Source of the DNA: Mytilus californianus
Taxonomy: Eukaryota
Length of the DNA stretch: 64,000 nt
Assembly (NCBI RefSeq): GCF_021869535.1
Contig: NW_026262593.1
Coordinates: 31,496,001-31,560,000, forward strand
Direction of reading: 5' to 3'
Shown here piece by piece: positions 9,631 to 51,760 of the stretch (positions within the stretch are counted from its first letter, which is position 1; each line of letters starts with the position of its first letter). The notes under the pieces were generated by a model. It was not told the DNA's origin, did not search any database, and saw only the letters and a program-made list of their open reading frames with translations. Both the position numbers and the translations under genes were made by a program.

Positions 9631-9677
9631 AAAAAAGATTGGACAGGAGGAGGTGTGATATTGATATGTAACATTAA

Positions 9678-11810: not shown

Positions 11811-11899
11811 CGCGGGAAAAAGCTCTAAACTAAATTTTCCGAAAAAAGGGCCATTTTTTTTCAACTTCAAATATTATATTCCACTCGTATAAAGGATTT

Positions 11900-13029: not shown

Positions 13030-13412
13030 TATATGTGTCTTTCTATGTTGTGATGTTACACTATTGTTTCGGAAAAAGGGTGAAGGTTTGGTACCATTAA
13101 AACGTTTAAACCCGCTGCATTTGTTTGCACCTGTCCTTAGCCAGGAATCTGATGTTCAGTAGTTGTCGTTTGTTGATGTGGTTCATAAGTGTTTCTCGTT
13201 TCTCGTTTTTTATATAGATTAGACCGTTGGTTTTCCCGTTTGAATGGTTTTACACTAGTAATTTTTGGAGCCCTTTATAGCTTACTGTTCGATGTGAGCC
13301 AAGGCTCCGTGTTGAAGACCGTACTGTGACCTATAATGGTTTACTTTTATAAATTTTGACTTGGATGGAGAGTTGTCTCGTTGGCACTCATACCACATCT
13401 TCTTATATCTAT
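13030..13412 (-). repeat. Dispersed repeat family copy (reverse)
   Basis: Reverse complement of 4051-4340 with an extension. Confidence 0.88.
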
Positions 13413-14629: not shown

Positions 14630-15260
14630 TTTTGTCGAGCCTGCAACTTCTGTCGCAGAAAGCTAGACATAGGGATAACGATGGAAATAATTTACGATGT
14701 ACATGTCAGTCTGGCAGGTTTTACTTGACCTTGACCTCGTTTTCACGGTTCATTGCTCAAGTTTTTGTGTTTTGGTCTGTTTTTTAAAACTATAATCAAT
14801 AGGTAAACTATAGTTGGTGTATGGAATGATTTTAAGGTGTATATGTCTGTCTGGCAGGTATCATCCGACCTTGACTTCATTTTCATGGTTCATTGGTCAA
14901 TGTCAAGCTTCCCTGGTTAAGTTTGTTTCTTAGATACTATATACAATATGTCATCTATATGTGAAGAAGGGTTCATCTGACCTTGACCTCATTTTCATGG
15001 TTCATTGGCCAATATAAAGTTTTCAGGGTTTGGTCTGTTTCTTGTATACTATAAGCAATAAGTCAACTATATTCGATCACGGTATGGAATGATTGTAAGG
15101 TGTACATGTATTTCTTGCTTGGTCTATCTGACCATGACATCATTTTCTAGGATCATGTTAAGTGTATGTGATACTTGTAGTAAAACTTTATAATTAGGAC
15201 TATCAACATAAAATCAATGGCTAATAAACCAGGCGAGACATTTCAGCGTGTGCACTCTTA
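14630..15260 (-). mobile_element. HINE/pearl-like non-autonomous element with internal tandem core repeats
   Basis: Terminal hairpin gtcgagcctgcaacttctgtcgcagaaagctagac, repeated gaccttgacctcattttcatggttcattgg cores and other end cagcgtgtgcactctt. Same family as 27640-28738. Confidence 0.75.
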
Positions 15261-15959
15261 AGATAATAGGCAGAAACACTCAAAATGGATAAAAATCATC
15301 ATAAAAAAGCAATAACTCCTGTAAGAATTTGACTGACCATTTTGGCCGTAAAATGTATTTGTAGATCTTGTTTATCTGGTCATTTTTGCTTTTTAAAGTT
15401 TCTTTTATAGGTTTTAAGATGTTAAGACAGAGACATATATACTAAAGTATATGTGTCTCTGGTTAAGGAAAAGAGTAAAAAAAGAGAGTGTAAAAATCAG
15501 ACTGAAAGGGCCGTAATAACTCAAATAAGAAGAAGTCAGACAATTTGGCCATGTTGACATATTTGTAGATCATGCTGCTCATTTTTGCTTTCAAAAGTAA
15601 TCTATCTTTTATTGTCTTTCAAGATAATGGCCAAATTATCAGACATATGTACTTTTACGGTACTAAAATCTGTCGATACCTGTATATTTTGGCATTGCAC
15701 AAGGTCATGATTTTCTCTAATTGTTAATGCCGTCTTTACACTAAATTAATTGGATGTTGGGTGTGTACTGATTGATATCTTAGCCTTAGAAACATGATTT
15801 TTTTTAATTAAATGTTATTGGCTTTGAACTAGCTGTCAGTAACTGCGAGTACTCTCAGATCTGTACTTGGTGATTTTTTTGTTGTTAGGGACGAAGTGTG
15901 GATAAATACCCTGTCACGTCTGGTCTGTGTTTTGTTTAATGTTTTTTGCTTTGTATCAG

Positions 15960-32945: not shown

Positions 32946-33074
32946 TACATGAATTGAAAATTTCCATAAAACAGAAAGTTGATAAAACAGAGAAACAAAA
33001 ATTGTTACATCATGTTTCAGTGTTCATGGTATAATGTTTCTCTAAAATAAATTCCCTATATTGGTTTTTTCTAA

Positions 33075-33164
33075 GGGCTATTCCATCAATAAATGTATGA
33101 TGGGAGGGTTGCAAGGCAGGTTTTTGTGACCCAACCAGCCATACATTTTTTGCTGGAATAGCCC
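33075..33164. mobile_element. PIF/Harbinger-type mini-MITE
   Basis: TAA|GGGCTATTCCA...TGGAATAGCCC|TGA. Confidence 0.65.
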
Positions 33165-33359
33165 TGAAGGCAATCTTTAATTAATATTAACTGTAGATAT
33201 CAAAGCAAAAATCTGTCAAGTTTCTATGCACAATGTATATAAAAGAATCATCAGTTTATGTACCAAGTATGGTTCCATCACAAGTCAAGTATATATTCAT
33301 ATGCAATTTGCAACAATTATACATTACCTACAATTGAGACACTCTGATTCATAAAATAA

Positions 33360-34110
33360 CTAATTCAAACTGATCCAAATGATTTTGTAGTCAGAATAAT
33401 ATGTTTCCATAGTTCCACATTTGAAGTCCTGATCAATGTTTGTGAAAATAAGATCTATTGTAGAGTTGTTGTCATTTGTTGGTCCTGTAATCACTTGCCT
33501 GTATTTCAATCCACCAACCATTAAATTTCTCAGTTCTTCTTTTTGGGCAGATTGTTTTTGCCAGTCAACATTGAAATCCCAAAGAATAATTGCCTCTGAA
33601 TCTTTCACATATTGATGGTACAGTGACAGCAGCACATGGCAAAGATCTTTCACGTCTGTTTTTGGTGGTTTGTACACAACCAGAATTACAACATTTGGTA
33701 GCAGTTCTGTCTTCACAACAGCCACCTCTATGGTTTTGTAAGTTTTTTTCAAAGGATACTCTTTTACAAAGTCTTCTTTACTGTAAACAGCTAAACCATG
33801 CACTGGTCGAGTAGCTTTACCAGATGAATTTTCCTTTTGTTTGTTGTTCTGGAATGGAAGCCTATTTGTATTATTAGTTACATCAGAAGAATTTTCATCT
33901 TGTCTGTACTGTTGAAAACTTGGCAGACTTGTTTCATTGAAAGAGTCTTTCTTGTGAAATCTTGTTTCTGAGAAGCAAGCAATATTTGTGGCCAAAACAC
34001 TATTGTCAGAACGTATGTCATCAATATGCCTACTCATGGACGATGCATTTAAGAAACATAGCTTCATGTCAGATTGTTCAATCTTGTATAGGAACTGAAG
34101 AGATGGTTGA
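33360..34110 (-). pseudogene. C-terminal apurinic (EEP) endonuclease domain of RepHel
   Basis: FLNASSM..ACFSETR..HGLAVYSK..VVYKPP..WDFNVD (GDFN)..TIDLIFTN..YSDY (SDH). Confidence 0.88.
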
Positions 34111-35600
34111 ACCGGGTTTTCTCTGAGTCGTTCCATTTCTTTCCGGACAGACTTATCTATGCCAATTTTGTCTTCTTGCAAGTTTGCTATATGCAGACCA
34201 TTCAGAGTTTGTACACGGCTGATAGCAACATAGTGAATATGGTCAACCTTTCTTTGGGTTGTTAAATCAACAACAGCTCTCTGCATAGTATCTCCTTGAC
34301 AGCGATGAATTGTTTTGGCATGAGCAGCTCTCAATGGGAACTGATATCTCTGAATCTGCGCTTGGCCTTTTGTGCCTGCACAGAAAGTCTTACCAATAGG
34401 TTCTAAAGGGGTCCATTCTTTTTTGTGACAAGACTTGTAAAATCTTCTGCTGTCCTTACGAAGTTGCTTTCCAATTTCTGGATCATTAAACTGAACCCAA
34501 AGTTTGCCAGAAGCAAAGAATGAGGCATCTGTAAGTTCCACTTTAACCATTTTACAAGAAGCCCCATTTATTAATCCATCAGATGTGTCCAAATTAACTG
34601 TTATTTCATAATGAACACCAACTGATACTTCAAGAATTGTACTGAGCTGTTTTGTTTGATTTTTGCTATTTTTGAATGTCTCCAATATTTTTGTTTTCAT
34701 TGAAGGTGGTGCAGACCCAACAAACTTATCCTTAGCCTTTATGGAGTAAACTAGATTAGGACTTCTGTGAATGATAGTACAGTTGTAGGAATCAACTCGC
34801 TCATTAGTTGTGAAAAGATGAGGAGCATCCCATGGATAATCTTCTGAATCCACAGCTATACCTTGACCTTTAAGTACATCTATATCTTCTGTAGTCTGCT
34901 TTCCTTCACGAACACGATTTAACAGCTTTTTTCTGCTTGTCTCATTATTGTATGAAGTTCAAACATTTTGAAACTTTCAGTCCAAAGATTAGTTGCTAAA
35001 GGTAAATATCCTGTCCTAGGAGATGAGAAAATATAACTATCCATTACAGGTTTGAGTTGAAAGAGGTCACCTACTGCAATGACCGATATGCCACCAAAAA
35101 GTTCTTTCTTCTGAGTTACCTCCACAAGCCGTTGATGAATACAATTAAACATGTTAAAACCTACCATTGAAATCTCATCAATGAAGATTAGTTTTACATC
35201 TCCAATTTGGTTTCTAAGTGTATTGAGTGCACTAGAAGACAGCGGTTTGTTCTGCAGCTTTTGATTTGCAGGGAGTTTCAAGGCACTATGGATTGTATTT
35301 CCTTTGATGTGGTAGGCAGCTTTACCTGTAGGGGCCATAAGTAAAATTTTCTTCAATGCAAATTCCTCTCCTGCTTTTTTGTTGAAGAATTTCAAAGCGA
35401 ACTGATAAAGAGCATTGGTAACATAACTTTTCCCAACACCGGCTCCACCACTAAGGAATCTATAAATTGGCTCTTGTTGTGTTTTGAACAAATGGATAGT
35501 GTCATACACTAACTCTATTTGTTCTTTGTTAAGTCGACGCATGTGTTGTCGAAACTCTTTATCAGGCATATCGTACTGTTTACTGATCTCATCCTCAGCA
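34110..35600 (-). pseudogene. PIF1-family SF1 helicase domain of RepHel
   Basis: GGAGVGKS; APTGKAA; TIHSAL; IDEISMV; GDLFQLKPV; IMRQ; QFPLRAAHAKTIHRCQG; YVAISRV. Confidence 0.95.
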
Positions 35601-36081
35601 TTGAAAGGTGGTAGTCCTAAATCTAAACCTATATCATAGTTTTCTATTCCTTTATCAGGTTGCTTGGAAGAATTAGCAAGGTCTTCTGCATTCTCACTCT
35701 CTGTCTGGGGAGCCAATTTATCCCACATCTCTTCAAGGTGTTCATTTTCATTTAAAAGACGTTGGGCTTCATCAACAGTATCACTAAAAGGTTCGTAAAT
35801 CTTTTGTTGCTCTTCTATCGTATCTTTGAAATGTTGATACGCCTCTGAATATGTAGGAAAGTTACATTTAAATGCATGTTCATCTCTCCATTGATTGTAC
35901 AGCATTAACTTTTCTCTATAATGTTTCTCTGGATCGGTATCGATGTTGAAATGTACAGATCGAATTACTCTTGCTCTTTTCTTTCTTTTGTACGGTCCTG
36001 TTGAAGTATCTTCCACATCCTGTTCATCGTCATTTTCAATGATGTTTGGCTCTGGTAAACATACTTGATTTGCATTTTTTT

Positions 36082-37545
36082 TTACTTGCTTCTGTTAATT
36101 GTTCTGGAAGGTGGCTCATCGTAATATGCTGCAAATTCTGCCAAAGTAACCTTTTCCATTGACTTTGGACGATCACTATATCTAGACAAAATGTTAGTGC
36201 ATTCAACATCGTCATCCTCATCTTTCATTGTGTCTAGAATGGAATTTGGTTTTAGTAATGTTACTCTTTCTTCAGGAGGGCTGGTGTTTAAAAATATAAC
36301 TTGTCTGGATGACTTTTTCATTGGCAGTTGCAAACATATGTAAACCGATTCCTGAGCTGATATCTCAACAGCATTTAGAAATTTGTTTTCAACCATTTTG
36401 ATCTGCTGTTTAATTGTTTGATTGCCATGTCTAACTTCTTCAGTTGCTTTCCTTAACAATTCACTCATTCCACGTTGAGATTTGGTTATGTATGATGCTA
36501 CATAGGTGGCACATGCATATACATCTAGCACAAATTGAACGTCAAGATTAGCTCTCCAGGCACGCAGAACATTAGTGTTATAGCTAGTTATCCTCACTTC
36601 TTTGAAAGAGCGTTTCAGGAAAACTGTTGCGGCCAATAAAGAAGCTCTGATTGCCAGGATGTACTCACTTTCTGTGATTTGTAATCTTTGAAGAAATGTA
36701 TCTATTTCTTCATTGTCAGTTTCAATGCTATCTAATTCCTTTGAAATTTTACTCCAGAGATTTTTGTATTTCAAAATCTCTTCTTTTGAAAAGTCTGCTT
36801 GAGTGAGTGGATGCAAAATTCTTGTAGTTTTTAAAGGTTTCGGATATCCAAATCGACACTTTTTTTTACGTGGTGATTTGCAAGTATGTGTATGCTTGTG
36901 TGTTTGGAATTTTACTAACTCTGAGATTTCACTTTCCTCTTCCGGTTTATGACATGTAATGAATCTATCGATGTATTCACAAACATCCTCATCAGAATCC
37001 TGTCCAAATATAGGAGCATCTTTGCAGTAAACAATCATGTGTACATGGGGGGATCCCCTCTGTTGGTACTCTATACGGTAAAAATAGTCAGTCACATTAC
37101 CTAGAGGATTTCCATCAGAGAGCAGAAACCCATTGATGAACTTCTGAGTTGAAAAATCGTAATGGCGTGCACATGTGACAGGATCACTTTGAATCAATCG
37201 ACATTTTTCTTGCCATGACATATTGTTCAGTTCATCATCGCTATAATCCTTTTTATCAACAATTCTCCCAAGAAGTCTTAACAAGTGTAACCATCTTGTT
37301 TCTGCAGCTGACAAAGTGACAAAAAATGTTGCTGGCCCAAGTTGACGGATAAGCGCAAACAGTTCCTTACTCACTTTCTCGAAATAAGGAGGTGAACCTC
37401 GAATGTTGGCAAGAAATTTGTAAGCTTTGTCCTCATGAACCATATCTAATGCTGCATCTCCTCTTACATCCTTTGCAGTTAATCTATTATCTTTTGTTTT
37501 CACTTTCCTTACTGTCATTTGAGTTTGGTCTATCAAGGTCTTCAT
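36082..37545 (-). pseudogene. HUH Rep domain of RepHel
   Basis: IRGSPPYF; IRQLGPATFFVTLSAAE; DPVTCARH; RIEYQQRGSPHVH (HUH, with the GSPH variant typical of Helentrons); CRFGYP; YACATYVASYITK; EISAQE. Confidence 0.95.
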
Positions 37546-37560
37546 CTGAATTTTCTTTGT

Positions 37561-38700
37561 CTAAAAGAATAAATTTTCAACTGACTGAGCAGCCCTTCTG
37601 TCAACATTTCTTAGTTCGGCCTTCACTATTTCTCCATAAATGATTCTGGTTTGTCGATCCTTATTTGGTGGACGCCTCTTTCCACAAAAGATACTAGGAA
37701 AAGCTAGCTCTTCAGAATCCTCCTGCATAAAAACACTGACAGGAATGTGACCTTCCCCTGGGGTAAAGTTATAAACAATATCTCGTTCTGATGGTTCAAC
37801 AAACCCAGGTGCAGATAGAAGAGTGTCTGCCTCTCCACTCATAAGTTCGCATTCATCAATTTCACTCCACTTGTCATCTTCATCATCACTGGCATCATTA
37901 GAATTTTTCATTTGGTCATTGTTTGATATATCATTTTTCTTAGGGTTTTGATTTAATTGTTCTTGTTCACTAATTACAAGGTATTCCTCAGTGGTATCAT
38001 TCTCCAGAGATGTCCCATTGTACAGGTCTTCCCAATCATTGTTTATCACCACATTGTGTTCTCTGTACAAAGGAGAATGTGATAGAAGTTTAGCAGCTTC
38101 TATTACCAACTGTGGTCTTATATTAAGGCAATACACATGATGTTTGTATTTCAAACGACGTTTTAATGTGGCTTTGATGGTAGCAGTTTCAGTTGTTAGC
38201 CTTGGTAGTTGTGTAACAGTCTGACAAACATTAGCTGGAACCAGAACCATGTTCCCTTGAATAAACTTTTGCCAACCTCTTGGTTCTTCGTGGATCTTCA
38301 TAAAAGGCAGTATGACGGAAACAAGAGTTTGCTCCAAAGGGTTTAGATCTTTCAAAATCTCTTGATCTGGAAATGTCATTAGGTTCATCACTGAGGTGGG
38401 CGGAATTTTACCTTTCTTTATGTAAGTCTTGCAAGTGTTGCATATCCAAATTGTATCATTTATACTCTTTATTCGTGGACATTGTAAAATGATGTTTGCT
38501 ACTTTCTCAGAATGTTTATTTGCAAATGTGACTTCAAATCTAGATACACTGTGCTTATACCAAAGTTGTTTACAAGACGTACATGTATATATAGGTCCTC
38601 CAGAAACAGTTCTATGAAAGTCACTGATTAATTCATTAATGTCTTTTGATTTGTTCTTTTTTCTTTGTTTTCTTTTAGCCAACTTTTCTTTCTTAGCTTC
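37561..38700 (-). pseudogene. Cys-rich / DUF6570-like N-proximal region of RepHel
   Basis: GPIYTCTSCKQLWY..WICNTCKTYIKKGKIP..LNPLEQTLV..GNMVLVP..EELAFPSIFCG..RRAA. Confidence 0.8.
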
Positions 38701-38827
38701 TGCACTTCTTTTTTTTTTGCGTAAAGTTTTTCTTCTTAAAGTTTCTCTCCTCTTATAAACACTGTTAAGTCTTTTGAATAAGCGTAACTTCTTTTCCCGA
38801 TTGATTTCTTTTTCTTTGCAAGAAGAA

Positions 38828-41800
38828 TCAAGTCTTTTTCTCTTACGAGCTTTAGTTTCACACTGAGTTTCATTGCTTTTAAACTGAACATCAAGTCTGT
38901 TCAATTTTCTAGCTTTTGCATCAATGTCTCTTTCCTTTTGCCTGTATTGTTCATCAAGTCTTTTCAATTTTCTAGCTTTCACATCAATGTCTCTTTCATT
39001 TTGCCTGTATTGTTCATCAAGTCTTTTTCTCTTACGAGCTTTAGTTTCCCGCTCAGTTTCATTGCTTTTAAACTCAACATCAAGTCTGTTCAATTTTCTA
39101 GCTTTCGCATCAATGTCTCTTTTATTTCGCCCATATTGTTCATCAAGTCTTTTTCTCTTACGAGCTTTGGTTTCACACTCAGTTTCATTGCTTTTAAACT
39201 CAACATCAAGTCTGTTCAATTTTCTAGCTTTTGCATCAATGTCTCTTTCCTTTTGCCTGTATTGTTCATCAAGTCTTTTCAATTTTCTAGCTTTCACATC
39301 AATGTCTCTTTCATTTTGCCTGTATTGTTCATCAAGTCTTTTTCTCTTACGAGCTTTAGTTTCCCGCTCAGTTTCATTGCTTTTAATCTCAACATCAAGT
39401 CTGTTCAATTTTCTAGCTTTCACATCAATGTCTCTTTCATTTTGCCTGTATTGTTCATCAAGTTTTTTTCTCTTACGAGCTTTGGTTTCACACTCAGTTT
39501 CATTGCTTTTAAACTCAACATCAAGTCTGTTCAATTTACTAGCTTTTGCATCAATGTCTCTTTCCTTTTGCCTGTATTGTTCATCAAGTCTTTTCAATTT
39601 TCTAGCTTTCACATCAATGTCTCTTTCATTTTGCCTGTATTGTTCATCAATTTTTTTTCTCTTACGAGCTTTGGTTTCACACTCAGTTTCATTGCTTTTA
39701 AACTCAACATCAAGTCTGTTCAATTTACTAGCTTTTGCATCAATGTCTCTTTCCTTTTGCCTGTATTGTTCATCAAGTCTTTTCAATTTTCTAGCTTTCA
39801 CATCAATGTCTCTTTCATTTTGCCTGTATTGTTCATCAAGTCTTTTTCTCTTACGAGCTTTAGTTTCCCGCTCAGTTTCATTGCTTTTAAACTCAACATC
39901 AAGTCTGTTCAATTTTCTAGCTTTCGCATCAATGTCTCTTTCATTTCGCCTGTATTGTTCATCAAGTCTTTTTCTCTTACGAGCTTTGGTTTCACACTCA
40001 GTTTCATTGCTTTTAAACTGAACATCAAGTCTGTTTAATTTTCTAGCTTTTGCATCAATGTCTCTTTCCTTTTGCCTGTATTGTTCATCAAGTCTTTTCA
40101 ATTTTCTAGCTTTCACATCAATGTCTCTTTCATTTTGCCTGTATTGTTCATCAAGTCTTTTTCTCTTACGAGCTTTAGTTTCCCGCTCAGTTTCATTGCT
40201 TTTAAACTCAACATCAAGTCTGTTCAATTTTCTAGCTTTCGCATCAATGTCTCTTTCATTTCGCCTCTATTGTTCATCAAGTCTTTTTCTCTTACGAGCT
40301 TTGGTTTCACACTCAGTTTCATTGCTTTTAAACTCAACATCAAGTCTGTTCAATTTTCTAGCTTTCACATCAATGTCTCTTTCATTTTGCCTGTATTGTT
40401 CATCAAGTCTTTTTCTCTTACGAGCTTTAGTTTCCCGCTCAGTTTCATTGCTTTTAAACTCAACATCAAGTCTGTTCAATTTTCTAGCTTTCGCATCAAT
40501 GTCTCTTTTATTTTGCCTGTATTGTTCATCAAGTTTTTTTCTCTTACGAGCTTTGGTTTCACACTCAGTTTCATTGCTTTTAAACTGAACATCAAGTCTG
40601 TTTTATTTTCTAGCTTTTGCATCAATGTCTCTTTCCTTTTGCCTGTATTGTTCATCAAGTCTTTTCAATTTTCTAGCTTTCACATCAATGTCTCTTTCAT
40701 TTTGCCTGTATTGTACATCAAGTCTTTTTCTCTTACGAGCTTTGGTTTCACACTCAGTTTCATTGCTTTTAAACTGAACATCAAGTCTGTTTAATTTTCT
40801 AGCTTTTGCATCAATGTCTCTTTCCTTTTGCCTGTATTGTTCATCAAGTCTTTTCAATTTTCTAGCTTTCACATCAATGTCTCTTTCATTTTGCCTGTAT
40901 TGTTCATCAAGTCTTTTTCTCTTACGAGCTTTAGTTTCCCGCTCAGTTTCATTGCTTTTAAACTCAACATCAAGTCTGTTCAATTTTCCAGCTTTCGCAT
41001 CAATGTCTCTTTCATTTTGCCTGTATTGTTCATCAAGTTTTTTTCTCTTACGAGCTTTGGTTTCACACTCAGTTTCATTGCTTTTAAACTCAACATCAAG
41101 TCTGTTCAATTTTCTAGCTTTTGCATCAATGTCTCTTTCCTTTTGCCTGTATTGTTCATCAAGTCTTTTCAATTTTCTAGCTTTCACATCAATGTCTCTT
41201 TCATTTTGCCTGTATTGTTCATCAAGTCTTTTTCTCTTACGAGCTTTAGTTTCCCGCTCAGTTTCATTGCTTTTAAACTCAGCATCAAGTCTGTTCAATT
41301 TTCTAGCTTTCGCATCAATGTCTCTTTCCTTTTGCCTGTATTGTTCATCAAGTCTTTTTCTCTTACGAGCTTTGGTTTCACACTCAGTTTCATTGCTTTT
41401 AAACTGAACATCAAGTCTGTTTAATTTTCTAGCTTTTGCATCAATGTCTCTTTCCTTTTGCCTGTATTGTTCATCAAGTCTTTTCAATTTTCTAGCTTTC
41501 ACATCAATGTCTCTTTCATTTTGCCTGTATTGTTCATCAAGTCTTTTTCTCTTACGAGCTTTAGGTTCCCGCTCAGTTTCATTGCTTTTAAACTCAACAT
41601 CAAGTCTGTTCAATTTTCTAGCTTTCGCATCAATGTCTCTTTCATTTCGCCTCTATTGTTCATCAAGTCTTTTTCTCTTACGAGCTTTGGTTTCACACTC
41701 AGTTTCATTGCTTTTAAACTCAACATCAAGTCTGTTCAATTTTCTAGCTTTCACATCAATGTCTCTTTCATTTTGCCTGTATTGTTCATCAAGTCTTTTT

Positions 41801-44624
41801 CTCTTACGAGCTTTAGTTTCCCGCTCAGTTTCATTGCTTTTAAACTCAACATCAAGTCTGTTCAATTTTCTAGCTTTCGCATCAATGTCTCTTTTATTTT
41901 GCCTGTATTGTTCATCAAGTTTTTTTCTCTTACGAGCTTTGGTTTCACACTCAGTTTCATTGCTTTTAAACTGAACATCAAGTCTGTTTTATTTTCTAGC
42001 TTTTGCATCAATGTCTCTTTCCTTTTGCCTGTATTGTTCATCAAGTCTTTTCAATTTTCTAGCTTTCACATCAATGTCTCTTTCATTTTGCCTGTATTGT
42101 ACATCAAGTCTTTTTCTCTTACGAGCTTTGGTTTCACACTCAGTTTCATTGCTTTTAAACTGAACATCAAGTCTGTTTAATTTTCTAGCTTTTGCATCAA
42201 TGTCTCTTTCCTTTTGCCTGTATTGTTCATCAAGTCTTTTCAATTTTCTAGCTTTCACATCAATGTCTCTTTCATTTTGCCTGTATTGTTCATCAAGTCT
42301 TTTTCTCTTACGAGCTTTAGTTTCCCGCTCAGTTTCATTGCTTTTAAACTCAAGATCAAGTCTGTTCAATTTTCTAGCTTTCGCATCAATGTCTCTTTTA
42401 TTTTGCCTGTATTGTTCATCAAGTTTTTTTCTCTTACGAGCTTTGGTTTCACACTCAGTTTCATTGCTTTTAAACTGAACATCAAGTCTGTTTTATTTTC
42501 TAGCTTTTGCATCAATGTCTCTTTCCTTTTGCCTGTATTGTTCATCAAGTCTTTTCAATTTTCTAGCTGTCACATCAATGTCTCTTTCATTTTGCCTGTA
42601 TTGTACATCAAGTCTTTTTCTCTTACGAGCTTTAGTTTCCCGCTCAGTTTCATTGCTTTTAAACTCAACATCAAGTCTGTTCAATTTTCCAGCTTTCGCA
42701 TCAATGTCTCTTTCATTTTGCCTGTATTGTTCATCAAGTTTTTTTCTCTTACGAGCTTTGGTTTCACACTCAGTTTCATTGCTTTTAAACTCAACATCAA
42801 GTCTGTTCAATTTTCTAGCTTTTGCATCAATGTCTCTTTCCTTTTGCCTGTATTGTTCATCAAGTCTTTTCAATTTTCTAGCTTTCACATCAATGTCTCT
42901 TTCATTTTGCCTGTATTGTTCATCAAGTCTTTTTCTCTTACGAGCTTTAGTTTCCCGCTCAGTTTCATTGCTTTTAAACTCAGCATCAAGTCTGTTCAAT
43001 TTTCTAGCTTTCGCATCAATGTCTCTTTCCTTTTGCCTGTATTGTTCATCAAGTCTTTTTCTCTTACGAGCTTTGGTTTCACACTCAGTTTCATTGCTTT
43101 TAAACTGAACATCAAGTCTGTTTAATTTTCTAGCTTTTGCATCAATGTCTCTTTCCTTTTGCCTGTATTGTTCATCAAGTCTTTTCAATTTTCTAGCTTT
43201 CACATCAATGTCTCTTTCATTTTGCCTGTATTGTTCATCAAGTCTTTTTCTCTTACGAGCTTTAGGTTCCCGCTCAGTTTCATTGCTTTTAAACTCAACA
43301 TCAAGTCTGTTCAATTTTCTAGCTTTCGCATCAATGTCTCTTTCATTTCGCCTCTATTGTTCATCAAGTCTTTTTCTCTTACGAGCTTTAGTTTCCCGCT
43401 CAGTTTCATTGCTTTTAAACTCAACATCAAGTCTGTTCAATTTTCTAGCTTTCGCATCAATGTCTCTTTCATTTCGCCTGTATTGTTCATCAAGTCTTTT
43501 TCTCTTACGAGCTTTGGTTTCACACTCAGTTTCATTGCTTTTAAACTGAACATCAAGTCTGTTTTATTTTCTAGCTTTTGCATCAATGTCTCTTTCCTTT
43601 TGCCTGTATTGTTCATCAAGTCTTTTCAATTTTCTAGCTTTCACATCAATGTCTCTTTCATTTTGCCTGTATTGTACATCAAGTCTTTTTCTCTTACGAG
43701 CTTTAGTTTCCCGCTCAGTTTCATTGCTTTTAAACTCAACATCAAGTCTGTTCAATTTTCTAGCTTTTGCATCAATGTCTCTTTCCTTTTGCCTGTATTG
43801 TTCATCAAGTCTTTTCAATTTTCTAGCTTTCACATCAATGTCTCTTTCATTTTGCCTGTATTGTTCATCAAGTCTTTTTCTCTTACGAGCTTTAGTTTCC
43901 CGCTCAGTTTCATTGCTTTTAAACTCAGCATCAAGTCTGTTCAATTTTCTAGCTTTCGCATCAATGTCTCTTTCCTTTTGCCTGTATTGTTCATCAAGTC
44001 TTTTTCTCTTACGAGCTTTGGTTTCACACTCAGTTTCATTGCTTTTAAACTGAACATCAAGTCTGTTTAATTTTCTAGCTTTTGCATCAATGTCTCTTTC
44101 CTTTTGCCTGTATTGTTCATCAAGTCTTTTCAATTTTCTAGCTTTCACATCAATGTCTCTTTCATTTTGCCTGTATTGTTCATCAAGTCTTTTTCTCTTA
44201 CGAGCTTTAGGTTCCCGCTCAGTTTCATTGCTTTTAAACTCAACATCAAGTCTGTTCAATTTTCTAGCTTTCGCATCAATGTCTCTTTCATTTCGCCTCT
44301 ATTGTTCATCAAGTCTTTTTCTCTTACGAGCTTTAGTTTCCCGCTCAGTTTCATTGCTTTTAAACTCAACATCAAGTCTGTTCAATTTTCTAGCTTTCGC
44401 ATCAATGTCTCTTTCATTTCGCCTGTATTGTTCATCAAGTCTTTTTCTCTTACGAGCTTTGGTTTCACACTCAGTTTCATTGCTTTTAAACTGAACATCA
44501 AGTCTGTTTTATTTTCTAGCTTTTGCATCAATGTCTCTTTCCTTTTGCCTGTATTGTTCATCAAGTCTGTTCAATTTTCCAGCTTTCCCATCAATGTCTC
44601 TTTCATTTTGCCTGTATTGTTCAT
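38828..44624 (-). repeat. In-frame coding tandem array, ~92 x 63 bp (21 aa; unit types LNRLDVEFKSNETERETKARK and RKRLDEQYRQNERDIDVKARK)
   Basis: All minus-strand ORF ends (37561, 40267, 40603, 41653, 41989, 42493, 43564, 44509) are in one frame, and spacings between like stops are multiples of 63. Confidence 0.97.
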
Positions 44625-45402
44625 CTTGATGTTTGTCCTTTAGAGCTTTTGATCCTCGTGCATTTTTATCTTGATTATAACTATCATTCTTTCGTTTGTT
44701 CCTTTTATCTAACACTTGTTTGAAAGTGAATCTCCTACTTTTCCTTCTATTCTGCATATAAGTCCTGAAGTAATCTGTTCTACTCATGGAAGGCTGAAAG
44801 AGATAAGATGTCAATTAATTTTTTAAGGGATGAGAGAAAAGTTGAGATACTACTAAGAATTTATATAACTAGTCTGGAAAAACCAGAAATTAACTAAATA
44901 GTAACGACAACCAGCGAAATGACCAAAATGATCCTTATTGCAAACCAAAAAATTCAAAACCCTCAAAATTGAAAGGCTTTATTCTCTAGAAGTGGTTGAT
45001 GTGAATGAATGACATCAGAAAAGCTAACAGGAAAACAGTAGCCAGAGAGAGATAGCAATAGGGATAGAAGTTATCATGACCAAACCATAATTAAAATTCC
45101 TAGATTCTTGTGTACGTCAAACCCAATCAATTTGACTTTGATTTTTGTTCATGTTTCTTTTGATAAGAGGTATTCATCTCAGTATCGGCAATATCCATAA
45201 GAACAAATAACAAATTTTATCAGGACTGTCAAGTTTTTATCAGACTTTTGTGTGAGATTTGACTTGCAAGAGACTAGACAGATCTGTTATATCAATAGAC
45301 ATGATTTTCAAAACAACAGATATTTACAGATTCCCTGTAATTTCTACATGAGGGTAGAATAAACTCCTGCTTTAGATAAACATGAAATGATTTAACTAAT
45401 AC

Positions 45403-45477
45403 CTTATTTTCATCTTTATCCACTGGACTTTGTTTTGGTATTTTGTAGTTTTTTGGGACTGTGTGAACTTTCAAGAT
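45403..45477 (-). CDS. Putative phase-0 exon of the RepHel gene (ILKVHTVPKNYKIPKQSPVDKDENK)
   Basis: ttccag| acceptor, AAG|gtatta donor, 75 nt open. Confidence 0.55.
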
Positions 45478-45648
45478 CTGGAATATAATCAAAGACATTA
45501 TATAAAATCAAATACAAAGTATGTTTGATAAGATGTAAAAAAATATCATCATAAACAAGGATATATTATTTATCATCTGAAACCAGCAATTAAACATATT
45601 CTAAGACTATGCCTTTCACATTGTACTCTTCTCACAATCATAACTCAC

Positions 45649-45877
45649 CTTCCAATAATGGGCAACAGTATCTCCAAGTATCATTAAGTACATCTGATCA
45701 AGGCATTTTTGAAATATGAACATGACATAATTTTTTCTATTTCTATTTTTAGTTATTTTGTGTTCATATTTCATTTCGTTACTGAATGTTCCTCGTTTTG
45801 TTGGTGGGTGTTTTTCTTGGTCTTCTAATTGTCCATTAAATTTCAAGTTAGAATCTTGGTTGCCTAGTTTTTACTTT
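45649..45877 (-). CDS. Putative exon with a +1 frameshift in an A-run
   Basis: tgtgtag| acceptor, AAG|gtgagt donor; 229 nt, open after removing one A. Confidence 0.45.
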
Positions 45878-45941
45878 CTACACAGATAGACAGACAGATG
45901 AATCATTTGAACATAAAAGAGCTTTCAATACATATTTATAC

Positions 45942-46382
45942 CTCTTTAGGAAGTGCCACAGGACTTGGTTTGGTTGTCGTTGCAATGGGTTGTCTCACAA
46001 AGGAGGGTACATGTGCTTGTTTCATGTAACATGGCTTAATTGAACGTGGTTTGGATGGACCTGGTTGTTGATCTGGTTCTGTTTTCGCTTGATATGGTTT
46101 GGATGGACCCCGTTGTTTATCTGGTTCTGTTTTGGCTGCATGTGGTTTGGATGGACCTGGTTGTTCATCTGGTTCTTTTTTCGCTAGACGTGGTTTGGAT
46201 GGACCCCTTTGTTTATCTGGTTTTGTTTTGGCTGCATGTGGTTTAGATGGACCCTGTTGTTTATCTGGTCCTGTTTTCGCTGGAAGTGATTTGGATGGAC
46301 CCAGCTGTGTCACTTCAAATGGCTTTTTCATGTTCTGTAGTTGCTTAGTTGAAACTAGGACCTGCTGTTTGGTGGTAGGAAC
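45942..46382 (-). CDS. Putative phase-0 exon encoding a Pro/Lys-rich 16-aa (48-bp) repeat (KTEPDKQRGPSKPHAA)
   Basis: ttttttag| acceptor, GAG|gtataa donor; 441 nt open. Confidence 0.65.
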
Positions 46383-46568
46383 CTAAAAAAACATACGTTC
46401 TTGATTTATACTTCAGAAAGAATTATCTGCATAAAGGTATGAGAAAACCTCAAAACATTTCTAAGCCAGTTTTCAGATTCATAAAACTCTTTCATTCAAT
46501 GAGTATGTTAAATATTTGTAAAGTCTTGCTGTAAAATGGGAAATTTTCAGGATTCTTAACACAATTAC

Positions 46569-46640
46569 CTTGTTGGAATATTTCTCTGGACCTGGTTCTG
46601 TAGCCATTGAGTTTTGTTGTCCTCCTTTAATGGTATCAAC
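46569..46640 (-). CDS. Putative phase-0 exon (VDTIKGGQQNSMATEPGPEKYSNK)
   Basis: gtttttag| acceptor, AAG|gtaatt donor; 72 nt open. Confidence 0.6.
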
Positions 46641-47377
46641 CTAAAAACAAAAGCATAGGCAACTAACTATACATGTACATGCAATTTTCAGGATACCTTT
46701 TACACAAGTTTTATATTGTAATGCATTGTTATCTAATATTGCATAACATGTATTCATAAGGGGCGTACCCACCACATGCAAAAGTGGCATAAATATGATG
46801 ATTTTTAGTGAAATTTTCACATTTCACTCCACTTGCCGATTTTAACACGTCACATCCCCTCTTAACTTAATTTCTTAGACCCCCCCCCCCCCCCCCCCCC
46901 CCATTCTGCTCCTCCTTGGTCACTTTTATAAATGTTTGATTAAAGAGCCTTGAAAAGGCAACATTTGAGGTACATACCAATGACTCTTTCTTCCGTTTTC
47001 TTTCCAATTGTAATGTCTTTTCGGACTTCTTTTCAAACTTCCCCATGATAAATAGTGTGATTTCACAAAGTATTATTTCTATATAATTTGAGTTGCCACT
47101 ATATTCTGTTACTTTGCACCAATCAATTCCATACTGTCCTGATTTTAGTCATGAAAACATCACCGGGTTATCCATTCACTAAAAAAAAAAAACTTTATTA
47201 CTATCAAATACATAAATTTTACAAAGTACATTCTTTGTGTACAAGTATATAAATTAACAACACAAAAAGTACAGTTTGCAATGTCAGCTCTGCAACTAAG
47301 TTAATTAATTAACAACATAAAAAGTACAATTCAGTTTGCAATATCAGCTCTGGAACTAAGTTTTTTCTATTGATCGA

Positions 47378-47932
47378 TCATTTGTCTTTGGTCTTTCCAT
47401 TAACATTCTTTGTGACTGCACTCGTAGATGCTTTGTTATCTTTCTTTGTGATGGCACTTGTAGATGCTTCATCAAAATTCTTTGTGATGGCACGTGTAGA
47501 GGCTTGATCATCATTCTTCGTGATGGCACTCGTAGAGGCTTCATCATTTTTCTTCATTGGTGTACTTGTAAAAGAACACTCTTCAAGTTTAATATTCTTT
47601 TCTTCTATTGAGTCATCCAAGAGTGACATTTCCAGTTCAAATTGTTGCACTCTTTCATATCTTTCACATTTTCTCTTCATGTCAAATTTTTCTTTCTTCA
47701 AACTGCAGAGTTCAGTCCTAAATTTTTTTTCGTTTTCTGCCATTGTCTTCTTTAGGTTTGAAAGTTCGTTATTCAGGTTGATAGCTTCCTTCCTTAATTC
47801 ATTTCCGAGCTTTTTAATTTTGTCTGTTGATGAGTTCATAAACCTTCCATGTTCATCATTTGATCTTGATACCTTTCCAAAGCATCCATTTACAGCAATT
47901 ATATCATCAGCAATTTGGTTAATCTTGTCCAT
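47378..47932 (-). CDS. Coiled-coil protein ORF with a C-terminal 12-aa (36-bp) repeat (NDEASTSAITKK), function unknown
   Basis: 184-codon ORF; the ATG follows a tatgtag| acceptor by 6 nt; heptad-like E/K/L-rich middle. Confidence 0.55.
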   Translation of the reverse strand: MDKINQIADDIIAVNGCFGKVSRSNDEHGRFMNSSTDKIKKLGNELRKEAINLNNELSNLKKTMAENEKKFRTELCSLKKEKFDMKRKCERYERVQQFELEMSLLDDSIEEKNIKLEECSFTSTPMKKNDEASTSAITKNDDQASTRAITKNFDEASTSAITKKDNKASTSAVTKNVNGKTKDK

Positions 47933-48304
47933 TTTTATCTACATAAAAAACAAGTATGGAACATTAAGTTATACCCTGCCACTTACCGATGGAAAAGGGG
48001 TGGATGACAATAAAATGAAAAATGGCAGAACTCAAAAAGTATATTTTGGATTAAGCCATTGATCCTTTCTTTAAGTTATAATCTGGAAACTGCCATGAGA
48101 GGACAGATAGACAGACACTCAACAGCTATTTTTTTTTGGAGGGAATCACATAATACTGTAATTGGCATGGTATAAAAATATTTCAAAATTCAAAATTGAT
48201 CCAAGAATACATGTACTTGAGTAATGGTATATCATTGAAAATGCTGATGCACAGACACAATGAGAGTGATTACTGTAGGAGGTTGCCGTTCTCACAACAA
48301 GACC

Positions 48305-48475
48305 CTAATAATGAATATCCCAGCCACTGCAGCTGATGTCCATGCCACTAGGCAAATCCATGATCATTTTGTCATTCCAAACTAGATTGTATTAATGAAT
48401 ATCCCAGCCACTGCAGCTACTGTCCATGCCACTGGGCAAACCCATGGTCCTTTTGTCATTCCAAACTCATTTGTA
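48305..48475. repeat. Two tandem ~84-bp units
   Basis: taatgaatatcccagccactgcagct..gtccatgccact..ttttgtcattccaaact occurs twice. Confidence 0.85.
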
Positions 48476-49179
48476 CTAGTATGCGAATATATTTAGAGAT
48501 AAGCATTTATAGAAAAGCATGATGTATGTTACAACAATTAAATGATACATTGGTAAGAGTTAAAGCTACAAAACATGCATAAACTATGTTTTATTTGTGA
48601 TGAAAGCATACTAATGATTAAGTGTGGAAGGTCCGGCAACACTATGAGGGAGCGGACCATGGAAAGGGTTACATTACAGGCAAATTTTTTTTTGTTATCA
48701 GAATCATAGTTGATACCCAATGAAATTGATCTGTATATGTAAAAGTGACATAATTTAGCAGCATTAGCCAAAAATCAGATGTAATGAAACCCTTTTTCAA
48801 ACCAAATGTTTTGGGTTTTGGTTGTCTTTAGTGAAGGAATGTCTGCTTAATTTTGAAAAAACTATATAAGCATGTTCATCAGTTTACATAAATTGCAGTT
48901 TTCACACTGCTATTATAAAAAAAATTTTAAAAAGTGAAAAAACATTTGATTTGAATGTTGCCATATGAAAGCTGTGCAAAGATTTTACTAAAGGATTTTA
49001 ATCAATATTTACCTTTTTTTTCAAGCTGCAATATACTCCATTCTAGCACATCTGAAATGCTGACTACAATCCCCCTATATTTAATGGAGCTGCTAGTGGG
49101 ATGTTGAAAACTCGGCAAAACATAAGCGTGTAAACTTTTAAGAAAAAGATACAGCAGGACAAAAGACAAAAAGGTCAAT

Positions 49180-49957
49180 AAAAATTCAATAACTCAAAAA
49201 TAAAATAAAGAATCATCATGAAAAAGAAAGTGTTATGCAATAATCATTAATAGTCTCTGAGATACAGTGTGACATGTGAACCCCCCCCCCTTTTTTTATA
49301 AAAAACTCAACTCAATAACTCTAAAATAAAATTTTGAATCATCACCAAAAAAAATACAGATCTTTAGATTAATATAACTAAGAAGTGTGTAAAATTTTAA
49401 GCAATAATCATAAATCGTTTTTGAGATACGGCGCGACATGTGAAAACCCCCTCCCCCTTTTTTTACAAAATACTCAATAACTCTAAAATAAAATTTTGAA
49501 TCATCACCAAAAAGTATACAGATCTTAAGGTTAATATAACTAAGAAGTGTGTAAAGTTTTAAGCAATAATCATAAACTGTTTTTGAGATACGGCGCGACA
49601 TGGGGAAAACCCCTCCCCCTTTTTTAACAAAATACTCAATATCTCTAAAATAAAATTTTGAATCATCACCAAAAGGTATACAGATCTTATGATTAATATA
49701 ACTAAGAAGTGTGTAAAGTTTTAAGCAATAATCATAAATTGTTTTTGAGATATGCCGCGACATGTGAAAAAAAACACACACCTGTTTTAGTTACTAAGTC
49801 CCGTAACTCAAAAAGTTTTAATCTTATTTTCACCAAAAAGTATACAGATCGTTTGACCATCATAAGAAAGAACTATGTTAAGTTTCATAAAATTTGGATA
49901 AGTCATTCTCAAGTTACTGTGCGACATGTTTACGCCGGACAGACAGACGGACAGACG

Positions 49958-49989
<32 letters not shown>

Positions 49990-50052
49990 GACGGACGCCG
50001 GACATTTGTATACCATAATACGTCCCGTCAAAAATTTGACAGGCGTATAAAA
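49180..50052 (+). mobile_element. HINE/pearl (DINE-1-like) element with ~160-bp internal tandem units and a (GACA/GACG)n microsatellite
   Basis: Three repeats of taaaataaaattttgaatcatcacc; microsatellite at ~49937-50000; terminal hairpin cgtcccgtcaaaaatttgacaggcg then tataaaa. Confidence 0.8.
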
Positions 50053-51760
50053 ACCAACGATTATTATCAAAATCTATAAAAGATAAATCCATGTATAAAA
50101 GTCCTGCAAATGCAGTTTAAAAGTGACATTATGTGCATGTTAAATAAAATGAAAAAATGATCACCACAAACTATATCAATGGTAAAATTATTATTATTTG
50201 ATTGACCTCATATCCAGAATGGTTCATGCATTTAAAGACTGTAAACAAAGCTAATAAAAAAAATCTGACAAGAATCTAGGGGATTATGGGTAATTTCCTT
50301 GTTCATACCCCCAGAATGGTATCACAAAATTTAGTGAACAGTTTTGAACATGATAACCAGAATGCATTAGATTCTGAAATAATGGTGAACAGTTTTAATG
50401 TACAAAATTTTACATATTGTTCAACAGAAACTGTGCTTTGACATGCCCTTGAACCAAGGTGTTTCCATCACTATTCTATTTTGTTTTTCTGACTGAATAA
50501 ACTTCAGCCAAAGTTGCACAACACAACTTAATGTATGCAAATGGTTGCAAGTCTTATGGATGTTTTGTAAAACAGTAACAGTACTCTGGTACTTCCCAAA
50601 TTACAATAATTTTACAGTTTTATTAAATGTAAATCAAATATACAATAATATCATGAAAGTAGAAAAAATGAAAACATATTCATAACTGGAAATTTGAAAT
50701 CAGAACAAAACCAAAATGATTACACAGAACACTGAGTCTTTCCTGTGCTGCTGCGGTCATTGCTAAGTTGACTGTCAAAAAATAAGTGAATTTATCAATA
50801 AAAAAAAGGAAATTCTCTTTTCTAAAGATTCTATATCTTGATCATGAAGAATTTTCTGTTCATGTTTCCTTACAGTCCGTGGAGGTTTAAAACAGTTATT
50901 TGTGTCTAAAAACTAAAACTATAACCCTAGGCTAAATGTAAATCTTAAATGCAAAAAAAGTCCATCTATCAGTAAAATACTGAAAATTGAATAAGTATAT
51001 TTTCTGAATTTTACTTCACACATTTTCTCTTAATCATTAAAAAGCTTCTCTGAAGGTTTCATAAAATTCTCTGAAGGTTTGACGCTATTGAGGTCTAAAA
51101 CTTTTAAACCCAAGACTGTATTGCAAAAAAACACTAAGTCCACTAGAATTCAAAGTTTTGCTTTTGATAGTGTCTTTTGATAAAGAATAATCTTCTGTTC
51201 AAGTTTCATGAAATTCCACGAAGTTTGACAAAGTTATTGATGTTTGAGAAACTTGAACTATAGACTGCATAATATTGGAAATGTTAATGAAAGAAACTAA
51301 AAGAAAACCAATCTTAATCCAGCAGGGGCATAAAAATTAAGAAGAAGAAAATGTCTAGTTATTGGCCAAACTGACGAAACTTCAAGTATGAAGAGTTAAA
51401 CAGGGGTATTATTTCCCCTTGACCCTGTTAGACTTATCATCCTTTACAACTGAGCAGAGTACATGCAGTGAGAGGCAGTCAGTCACATATCTGTGACGAT
51501 TAGTAAATGTAGATTATTTTTAGATCTTTTATTCTTTACCAATGGAAATGTTTACTAGATAAGAACCATTATATCTGTTAGACAAAAGTTTATGTCCACA
51601 AGTAAACAATTGTCCATGCCATTTAATAGTAGGGAGAAAAAGATAGTTTAGTAAAAATTCAAAACACAAAAATAACCCGTAATTATAACCTCCATTTTTG
51701 TTGAAAATGGAGAATCTTTACATTACCACAAATTTTAAATGTTTATAATACATTCTTTAA

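Follow-up and report, generated by a model that had tools for sequence, protein, structure and literature searches.

The window, a stretch of 64,000 nt from Mytilus californianus (contig NW_026262593.1), contains a whole Helentron copy, the features of which are read from the minus strand (Table 1). The boundaries of the element were placed by homology to a paralogous copy on a Mytilus edulis contig (L001), positions 3002-15854 of which align to window positions 50054-32946, with unrelated flanks on both. Helentron ends are expected to have subterminal inverted repeats and a palindrome close to the 3′ end, with insertion between T and T; hairpins lie near both ends of this copy, and a subterminal inverted repeat was sought, but no convincing one was found. 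The microsatellite near the 5′ end is also present in L001, where it is 14 nt shorter, and the non-coding 162-bp repeat of the 5′ region has 2.7 copies there.

Table 1. Features of the Helentron copy in the window (positions are those of the window).
Feature	Position	Strand	Basis or remark
Whole Helentron copy, ~17.1 kb	32946..50054	-	Limits are the ends of homology to the paralogous copy
Short hairpin ACGCCTGTCAAATTTTTGACGGGACGT, ~8 nt inside the 5′ boundary	50020..50046	-	Sequence reading and folding; conserved in L001
Tetranucleotide microsatellite (TCCG/TCTG)n (element strand), near 5′ end	49936..49997	-	TRF period 4, 15.5 copies
Non-coding 162-bp tandem repeat ×3.3, 5′ region of element	49227..49770	-	TRF
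Separate upstream ORF, 184 aa, with in-frame 36-bp (12-aa) repeat ×4.2	47381..47932	-	Stop at 47378-47380; outside the RepHel frame
Likely first RepHel coding segment, ATG at 47046 plus 23 codons to splice donor	46978..47046	-	RNA joint 46638/46976 (GT..AG) and phase arithmetic
Exon 2, 72 nt, phase 0, open	46569..46640	-	RNA joints in runs X16 and X18; translation
Exon 3, 441 nt, open, Pro/Lys-rich, in-frame 48-bp (16-aa) repeat ×5.4	45942..46382	-	RNA joints and TRF
Exon 4, 75 nt, phase 0, open	45403..45477	-	Joints 45477/45942 and 44793/45403, GT..AG on minus strand
Last exon, ~3,810 codons, interrupted by 10 stops and two frameshifts	33363..44793	-	Own terminal stop at 33360-33362
Array, 92 × 63 bp (21 aa)	38839..44634	-	Built of units A (KRLDEQYRQNERDIDAKARKL) and B (NRLDVEFKSNETERETKARKR); higher-order pattern of 315 bp
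Exact internal duplication, 855 bp, no mismatch	42769..44568	-	43714-44568 = 42769-43623
Nine in-frame array stops	40267..44511	-	TAA starts 44509, 43564, 42493, 41989, 40603; TAG starts 44299, 43354, 41653, 40267
Basic NLS-like linker after the array (e.g. KRKQRKKNK)	38641..38838	-	Translation
Two CxxC motifs (38572-38583, 38431-38442), then DUF6570	38035..38583	-	Pfam DUF6570, 1.3e-10
In-frame TAG between DUF6570 and Rep	37561..37563	-	
Rep domain (Helitron_like_N), Helentron-type motif FYRIEYQQRGSPHVH at 37039-37083	37030..37515	-	Pfam, 1.4e-26
Frameshift between Rep and helicase	36083..36094	-	1-nt difference from L001 at 36083
PIF1-like helicase	34928..35533	-	Pfam PIF1, 4.3e-24; Walker A GGAGVGKS at 35426-35449
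C-terminal AP-endonuclease-like domain	33420..33986	-	Exo_endo_phos, 5e-4, weak, below the Pfam cut-off
Hairpin, arms of 26 nt, lying 130-220 nt inside the 3′ boundary	33074..33165	-	Conserved in L001

The Helentron signature is a serine between the glycine and the proline of HUH motif 2, with F/Y-x-R just upstream (PMC4067079), and DUF6570 is a marker domain of Helentrons/HLE2 (PMC11417382). The HUH motif of the window copy reads GSPHVH (37039-37056), and the two catalytic tyrosines of Rep lie in YVASYITK (36481-36504). Five full-length relatives are collinear with the endonuclease region at their C-termini (28-31% identity), and in other relatives (P0100, P0156 and P0186) the domain passes the Pfam threshold. 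The signature HUH motif, the two tyrosines, PIF1 fused C-terminally to Rep, the AP endonuclease and DUF6570, by which HLE2 is recognized, were all found; the Pfam matches of Rep, PIF1 and DUF6570, together with the collinear endonuclease region, bear out the original prediction that this is a Helentron-type RepHel-EN gene.

RNA contigs from four runs (the public runs are assembled contigs, not raw reads) contained four GT..AG introns, and the joint 44793/45403 was present in all four runs, including one declared as RNA-Seq, in agreement with the predicted multi-exon structure with a very long last exon. The contigs extend into the first array units, and the array is thereby shown to be exonic at its beginning, over the units that these contigs reach. 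The ATG at 47932, originally taken as the gene start, instead opens the separate 184-aa ORF, which RNA contigs traverse unspliced while supporting other small exons. A Pfam search with this ORF gave no match, and its 188-aa counterpart is intact in L001. The RepHel start codon would be the ATG at 47046. In L001 and in another copy, L003, the 48-bp repeat of exon 3 is present 7.3 and 7.1 times, respectively. In its native state, the gene would consist of small 5′ exons spliced to one very long last exon, and the protein would comprise, in this order, the 21-aa basic helical array, the basic linker, CxxC, DUF6570, Rep, the PIF1 helicase and the AP endonuclease.

As had been predicted, the array is made of 92 in-frame 21-aa units, each exactly 63 bp in the assembly, which is the sole source of this length, and the repeat is K/R/E/D-rich, in coding frame and predicted to be helical. 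Inter-unit indels are absent (91 of 91 spacings are 21 aa), a 43-nt unit pattern had 53 matches at three or fewer mismatches versus 0 expected by chance, and the array is in one frame with the basic linker, the two CxxC motifs and DUF6570. The 91 units compared fall into no more than 24 distinct DNA sequences, and the blocks of units are ordered as a mosaic with unique junctions. Beside the 855-bp duplication, further block pairs are exact (41566-42353 = 40180-40967; 42606-43389 = 40905-41688), the blocks measuring 784-855 bp. The perfect identity of these blocks, and the fact that other assemblies have 2 and ∼18 units, would be expected if the true array were much shorter and near-identical blocks had been multiplied by the assembler or polisher. 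Such an artefact could account for part of the block identity, but it is improbable as the origin of the array: the mosaic block order, the unique junctions and the 24 unit variants argue against it, 16 units at the 3′ side of the array are unique and stop-free, 5.8 kb is well inside modern long-read length and the window is without N runs. Differences between units are synonymous in 9 and non-synonymous in 41 cases, with no excess at third codon positions; because of this ratio and distribution, the variation between units looks neutral.

The gene copy is a pseudogene. Instead of the intact ORF of an autonomous element, it has 10 in-frame stops, nine of them in the array, and two frameshifts. 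The second frameshift (34928) results from 13 nt of L001 that are missing in the window; both frameshifts are absent from L001 and, because full-length relatives align collinearly across them, are plain indels and not introns. Thus, the array shares its frame with DUF6570, but the claim that Rep, PIF1 and the endonuclease also lie in one frame with it fails on these stops and indels. The array stops stem from only two mutations (TAA five times, TAG four times), each in one unit variant and spaced 8-27 units. Because the stops multiplied together with the array, the turnover of the array must be later than the disabling of the gene. The three marks of minisatellite expansion in a pseudogene are all present: disabling mutations that travelled with blocks of several units, recent duplicates without a mismatch, and variation between units that looks neutral.

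Multiplied stops by themselves indicate turnover after inactivation, not its direction, and the case for net growth comes from comparing this array with those elsewhere. L001, which is 96% identical to the window copy (3.6% difference), has an array of ∼18 units, and L003 has one of 2, which may reflect short-read collapse. Arrays in the window's own clade have 5-18 units, and those in 195 relatives at most ∼18 (410 aa); 83 of the 134 relatives with an N-terminal extension carry an array directly before the core, again at no more than ∼410 aa or 18 units. Tabulating the repeat number of homologues, as had been proposed, therefore gave ∼2-18 units in sister copies and relatives, none near 92. 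Because L001 has ∼18 units and the relatives no more than ∼18, the giant length is a private expansion after inactivation and not a property of the working protein. That ∼90 units were already present in the active element, the stops having been spread later by gene conversion or by balanced gain and loss that left the array no longer than before, would be compatible with turnover of either direction, but is very unlikely in view of the ∼18 units of the 96%-identical paralogue and the 5-18 units of the window's own clade; a search for proteins of 495-1577 aa in which the 21-aa repeat forms a long array also gave none, which is a weak test.

The original prediction had envisaged a giant working RepHel protein, in which ∼1,900 residues of charged helix serve as a spacer, rod or condensate former. 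The 63-bp register is perfect across 5.8 kb, the array is in frame with DUF6570, and the family is transcribed and spliced. However, DNA-level duplication of whole units also preserves the register, which is for this reason no sign of selection, and the 10 in-frame stops and two frameshifts, the neutral-looking variation between units and the lack of any relative with more than ∼18 units leave such a transposase next to no plausibility; the window copy is a pseudogene whose stops multiplied with the array. The element is probably a decayed autonomous Helentron (HLE2) copy whose array grew after inactivation. Starting from ∼5-18 units, as in working relatives, the array of the already disabled gene would have been enlarged to 92 units by successive rounds of unequal exchange or replication slippage involving blocks of 8-27 units, and this block copying would have carried the two stop mutations to five and four copies. 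With such a history, the 1,900-residue "N-terminus" would be a coding-derived minisatellite in a pseudogene, and not a protein feature.

The short array (∼5-18 units), by contrast with the giant one, is a conserved, undescribed part of Helentron transposases. The 21-aa repeat, with the motif xDxxY[RK]xxE...R, was found N-terminal of the core of Helentron transposases from insects (lacewing, blowfly and thrips among them), molluscs (among others oysters, clam and mussels) and corals; a period of exactly 21 aa holds for every one of the 92 units of the window and for at least 36 relatives. Two predicted proteins of 2,072 and 2,093 aa, 99.2% identical, differ by exactly one unit. In a gapless alignment of four-unit pieces from 18 proteins, E9 and R21 were invariant in every unit (in the fourth unit, E9 in at least 90% of rows), and D2, Y5 and R/K6 were conserved in at least 70%. 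Searches of Pfam, and of PDB by sequence and profile, with the 21-aa arrays gave no match, and an N-terminal 21-aa array is mentioned in neither PMC4067079 nor PMC11417382.

Modelling of a few units with AlphaFold2, as had been suggested, predicted a helical repeat: with an alignment, the prediction was one short helix per unit and not a single rod (H3-21, H24-43, H45-64 and H66-83; pLDDT 91.5), and without an alignment long continuous helices. STPR repeats recognized by Pfam (E 5e-30 to 4e-12) occupy the same position in a sister clade (99% support), and STPR lies helix by helix in the major groove of DNA (PMC4856987). The STPR-DNA structure 5d23 (chain A) was the only long low-rmsd match of the model (2.9 Å, 62 of 64 residues), with a Z of 4.8, which is within noise for helical models. 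The sister-clade arrays of P0166 and P0178 served as positive controls for the STPR searches and matched Pfam STPR at 5e-30 and 5d23 (FMBP-1 STPR-DNA) at 6e-7, respectively, whereas the STPR Pfam model (PF21107) matched none of the 21-aa arrays, and the scores of an hhalign comparison of 21-aa with 23-aa repeats did not exceed those of column-shuffled controls. Tentatively, the analysis suggests that the native short array may bind DNA much as STPR does, each unit placing a short helix along the DNA, and that it would thereby help to keep the transposase attached.

A single-alpha-helix (SAH) or coiled-coil spacer or oligomerization rod that does not bind DNA is a somewhat less likely alternative for the native short array. 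The missing sequence link to STPR and the continuous helices modelled without alignment would agree with it, as would the composition of the repeat (charged residues make up 56% of it, and pairs of opposite charge occur most often at i to i+4, 0.21 per residue) and the hydrophobic residues at heptad "a" positions in A-type units, the hydrophobics of which are L3, Y7, I14 and L21. B-type units, however, lack this seam and have only L3, V5 and F7, and the net charge is positive (+2.3 per unit). With hydrophobics at 3 of 21 positions in the B type and a helix that the aligned model breaks at every unit boundary, the notion that three heptads make a coiled coil is weak. The conservation of specific residues beyond composition across phyla (invariant E9 and R21; Y5) argues against a pure SAH, and the repeats at the same position in the sister clade are true STPR DNA-binding repeats.

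Compared with described Helentrons (HLE2; Thomas et al, 2014, PMC4067079; HELIANO, PMC11417382), the window copy has the same QQRGSPHVH Rep motif, the same two catalytic tyrosines, PIF1 helicase, C-terminal AP endonuclease and DUF6570 in one ORF, and likewise hairpins near both ends and internal tandem repeats plus a microsatellite. It differs from autonomous HLE2 Helentrons in being a pseudogene, and from its Helentron relatives (n = 195) in an array that is ∼5 times longer than any found. With STPR, the native array would share tandem short basic repeats with one predicted helix per repeat and a short break between, the position directly N-terminal of DUF6570, as in the STPR-bearing sister clade, and a predicted fold that superposes on DNA-bound STPR at the rmsd given above, the Z again being within noise. 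In contrast to the strict 23-residue period of STPR and its conserved E1, T/S2 and R9, the period here is 21 and the conserved residues are D2, Y5, R6, E9 and R21, and the 21-aa arrays are without an HMM, profile or PDB sequence match. The HINE/Cg_HINE satellite-like repeats of bivalve non-autonomous Helentrons (PMC7492417) are also arrays inside Helentron-family elements, variable in number among copies, with higher-order structure and apparent growth by unequal exchange; those, however, are non-coding central repeats, whereas the array of the window is derived from transposase-coding sequence and has a period that is a multiple of three.

On the minus strand, the frame running from 44814 down to 36085 comprises a pre-array segment followed by a run of 21-aa units, the unit-to-unit spacing being exactly 21 aa in 91/91 cases. 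The length of 92 units was read from the assembly, the public runs existing as contigs only. Tandem Repeats Finder reported periods of 63, 126, 189, and 315 bp, the last of which (a five-unit higher-order repeat) had the top score, and a 43-nt unit pattern matched 53 times at ≤3 mismatches (0 expected by chance). Two unit types were distinguished, A (n = 54; KRLDEQYRQNERDIDAKARKL) and B (n = 37; NRLDVEFKSNETERETKARKR), the latter without a hydrophobic seam; basic residues make up 34% and acidic residues 23% of the array (net charge +2.3 per unit). The original prediction, a giant Helentron RepHel protein with ~92 N-terminal 21-aa repeats, was largely right as an observation of the array. A giant working protein, however, is not encoded: nine in-frame stops lie inside the array, an additional TAG is present at 37561-37563, and the frame changes twice, near 36083-36094 and at 34928.

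Features of the Helentron copy on the M. californianus contig
Feature	Position	Strand	Detail
Separate ORF	47381-47932	-	184 aa; opened by ATG at 47932, stop at 47378-47380
Intron joint	46977 to 46641	-	GT..AG; contigs of public runs
Intron joint	46568 to 46383	-	GT..AG; contigs of public runs
Intron joint	45941 to 45478	-	GT..AG; contigs of public runs
Intron joint	45402 to 44794	-	GT..AG; all four runs
Array	38839-44634	-	92 x 63 bp (assembly sequence)
Basic linker	directly after array	-	
Two CxxC motifs	after basic linker	-	
DUF6570	after CxxC motifs	-	1.3e-10
Helitron_like_N	after DUF6570	-	1.4e-26
PIF1	after Helitron_like_N	-	4.3e-24
Exo_endo_phos	after PIF1	-	weak match, 5e-4

Compared with Helitrons, Helentrons are characterized by a serine between G and P and an F/Y-x-R just upstream (PMC4067079), both of which are carried by the Rep motif of the window copy (FYRIEYQQRGSPHVH). 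DUF6570, which resides in the same ORF as RepHel, marks the Helentron (HLE2) group (PMC11417382). Between the two ends of the element, the best candidate for subterminal inverted repeats was a 9-nt match that included flanking sequence. A paralogous copy on a Mytilus edulis contig (L001; assembly GCA_905397895.1) aligned to window positions 50054-32946 with unrelated flanks, which therefore sets the limits of the element (~17.1 kb in the window and 12.9 kb in M. edulis); at 96% identity to M. edulis DNA, the window would fit a congener. Introns as the cause of the two frame changes were ruled out: five full-length relatives are collinear over both, with 0-11 residues missing, and compared with the 96.4%-identical M. 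edulis paralogue, they correspond to 1-nt and 13-nt differences. The frame changes are, thus, indels. Because the paralogue has other indels of its own, the two copies decayed independently; that in the window is a dead Helentron.

To establish the gene model, contigs from four public runs (one declared RNA-Seq) were compared with positions 44450-48150. They are 90-99% similar to the window and derive from other copies or species, so that they are not evidence for expression of the window locus. The joints they support (see the table) delimit internal exons of 72, 441, and 75 nt, each open and in phase 0. From 44793, contigs run into the first array units (to about 44575), and the start of the array is therefore exonic in transcripts of this Helentron family. 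The ATG at 47932, which the original prediction had taken as the gene start, opens a separate ORF through which contigs pass unspliced; from the gene model, we infer that RepHel likely starts at the ATG at 47046. In all searches, exons were treated singly and unjoined, and the pieces between stops were searched separately. In one contig of run X16, exon 2 (46569) is spliced straight to the last exon (44793), skipping exons 3 and 4 but keeping the frame, which suggests that the N-terminal exons are alternatively spliced. In another contig of this run (449 nt), exon 4 is followed by the beginning of the last exon, array units, 13 nt without a match, exon 3, and a second exon 4; this order probably reflects a cycle in the assembly graph at the repeats, but a circular or tandem form is conceivable as its origin.

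The separate ORF, located upstream of the RepHel exons, has a counterpart in the M. edulis paralogue (L001 5041-5607) and is intact in both copies (184-188 aa). Its predicted product is rich in charged residues, with a 12-aa in-frame repeat, and did not match any Pfam family. Exon 3 (45942-46382, minus strand) is built on a 48-bp/16-aa Pro/Lys-rich repeat (GPSKPxxAKTEPDKQx) present in 5.4 copies in the window, 7.3 in the M. edulis paralogue, and 7.1 in a further copy (L003), and a single element, hence, harbors three distinct in-frame minisatellites (36, 48, and 63 bp). The 5' non-coding part contains a 162-bp tandem repeat (x3.3; 49227-49770) and, at about 60-120 nt from the element's 5' end, a tetranucleotide microsatellite, (TCCG/TCTG)n, at 49936-49997; both are also found in the M. 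edulis paralogue, at different lengths.

The stops within the array, spaced 8-27 units apart, are of only two kinds, a TAA in units ending "ARK*" (five times) and a TAG in "EQ*RR" (four times). Among 91 units compared, only 24 were distinct at the DNA level, and long runs of units recur in identical order along the array. Mismatch-free block duplicates of 855, 788, and 784 bp were found at shifts of 945, 1386, and 1701 bp, respectively, whereas the window copy and its M. edulis paralogue diverge by 3.6%; polishing could account for some of the perfect identity between blocks. Differences between units of the same type (9 synonymous versus 41 non-synonymous) were not enriched at third codon positions and are roughly as under neutral change. 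The nine stops are two mutations that were multiplied with the array, and with these as markers, it follows that duplication within the array continued once the gene had died. On their own, the multiplied stops are proof of turnover and not of growth.

Whether 92 units reflect net growth can be judged from other copies. In the M. edulis paralogue, the array (about 8400-9554) comprises ~18 units, 12 of them clean. In the further copy L003 (a 7.5-kb ENA contig, 96% identical), the same flanks enclose exactly one unit of each type (A and B), which may be due to short-read collapse. A full HMMER scan of 1.84 billion representative proteins, with the junction piece as query, yielded 3,209 matches, and a tandem array of at least three units directly precedes the conserved core in 83 of the 134 relatives with at least 60 aa N-terminal of it. 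The most frequent period was 21 (or 42; 41 cases), followed by 23 or 46 (14 cases) and 38 (8 cases); 17, 30, and others were rarer. In the window's own clade, arrays have 5-18 units. The longest arrays among the relatives examined span ~385-410 aa, about one-fifth of that in the window, with the caveat that protein databases hold gene predictions in which long arrays are possibly truncated. When proteins of 495-1577 aa with a long 21-aa array were sought by shared words, only three distant matches were obtained; this was a weak test, as scoring was limited to the 8000 candidates with the most words in common, and a known 644-aa M. edulis product was missed. Two predicted proteins (2,072 and 2,093 aa) that are 99.2% identical differ by exactly one 21-aa unit. 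Because the arrays of relatives and other copies are short, and given the evidence for turnover, the 92 units point to net growth in the dead copy: a native, conserved 21-aa module has run away as a coding-derived minisatellite in a decayed Helentron. What looked like a giant N-terminus is an expanded repeat in a transposon copy that is dead.

Conservation of the module itself was assessed by rotating the unit consensus of 37 period-21 arrays onto the window unit. In this numbering, R2 (32/37), D/N4 (30/37), Y/F7 (26/37), R/K8 (33/37), and E11 (30/37) were kept, and the mean score of the rotated units was 29, compared with 15 for shuffled ones. In a gapless four-unit alignment of the window and 17 relatives, the numbering of which is two residues behind, E9 and R21 were invariant in each unit (E9 of the fourth unit in ≥90% of rows). 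According to the source records, hosts of the arrays include Chrysoperla, Calliphora, Frankliniella, Saccostrea, Mya, and Mytilus, as well as the corals Paramuricea and Oculina. Neither a consistent Pfam family nor, by sequence or profile, a matching solved structure was found for the 21-aa arrays, and no paper on an N-terminal coiled-coil of Helitron RepHel was found in the literature. The Pfam match to DUF5713 (1.2e-14) is an artefact, the sum of many weak matches to one 32-residue stretch; matches of other 21-aa arrays to unrelated families (wH_RNase_II, DUF3637, and others) are likewise repeat or composition artefacts. In five related Helentron proteins (P0166, P0178, P0169, P0184, and P0185), a Herpes_teg_N (herpesvirus-tegument-type protease) or OTU domain is N-terminal of the array, the order being protease, repeats, DUF6570, and Rep.

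Relatives with a period of 23 aa at the same position carry true STPR repeats (PF21107; 5e-30 to 4e-12), and one such array matches the solved STPR of Bombyx FMBP-1 (6e-7). STPR is a DNA-binding domain in which each repeat places one helix in the major groove, covering 4 bp, and which binds tandem 4-bp repeats (PMC4856987). In a 116-row tree of the core, proteins with the 21-aa type are scattered throughout, and the window falls into a well-supported 21-aa clade, the sister clade of which includes STPR-bearing proteins; therefore, the position is shared but the repeat type changed many times. Profile-profile comparison of 21-aa with 23-aa units (hhalign, two designs) gave no signal above column-shuffled controls. 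When 349 aa were modeled by AlphaFold2 without an alignment, long helices resulted (pLDDT 83). A single-alpha-helix or coiled-coil spacer, ranked second as a reading of the native short module, is rather unlikely. With an 18-row alignment, AlphaFold2 predicted each of the four units as a helix of its own (pLDDT 91.5). Foldseek did not match the four-unit model to any PDB entry; in a full VIA-align scan, STPR with DNA (5d23_A) ranked fourth (rmsd 2.9 A, 62/64 residues) and was the sole long alignment of low rmsd, its Z of 4.8 being within the noise for helical models. The best single hypothesis, put forward tentatively, is that the native short module may bind DNA as an STPR-like array. It would be a long shot that the 21-aa repeat is an unnamed relative or analogue of STPR that reads short tandem DNA repeats with one helix per unit, its targets being either the element's own subterminal (TCCG/TCTG)n or the satellite-like central repeats of non-autonomous partners. 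If so, unit number would tune binding, and the joint travel of Helentrons and tandem repeats in bivalves could be explained.

The window copy provides a clean textbook case in which two stop mutations mark duplication after gene death. It indicates that a satellite-like array of several kilobases can originate from the coding sequence of a Helentron in a bivalve, a further way in which the known association of Helentrons with satellite DNA can arise. Both period (17, 21, 23, 30, and 38 aa) and unit number of the module shift fast, even between 99%-identical copies. The value lies not in the 92 units but in the conserved module, which is unannotated and has invariant residues common to insect, mollusc, and coral Helentron transposases, and in the STPR-bearing sister clade. 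The 21-aa module has no detected sequence link to STPR but shares its position, and a module at the site taken by STPR in the sister clade offers a testable idea of how these little-understood rolling-circle transposases hold DNA.
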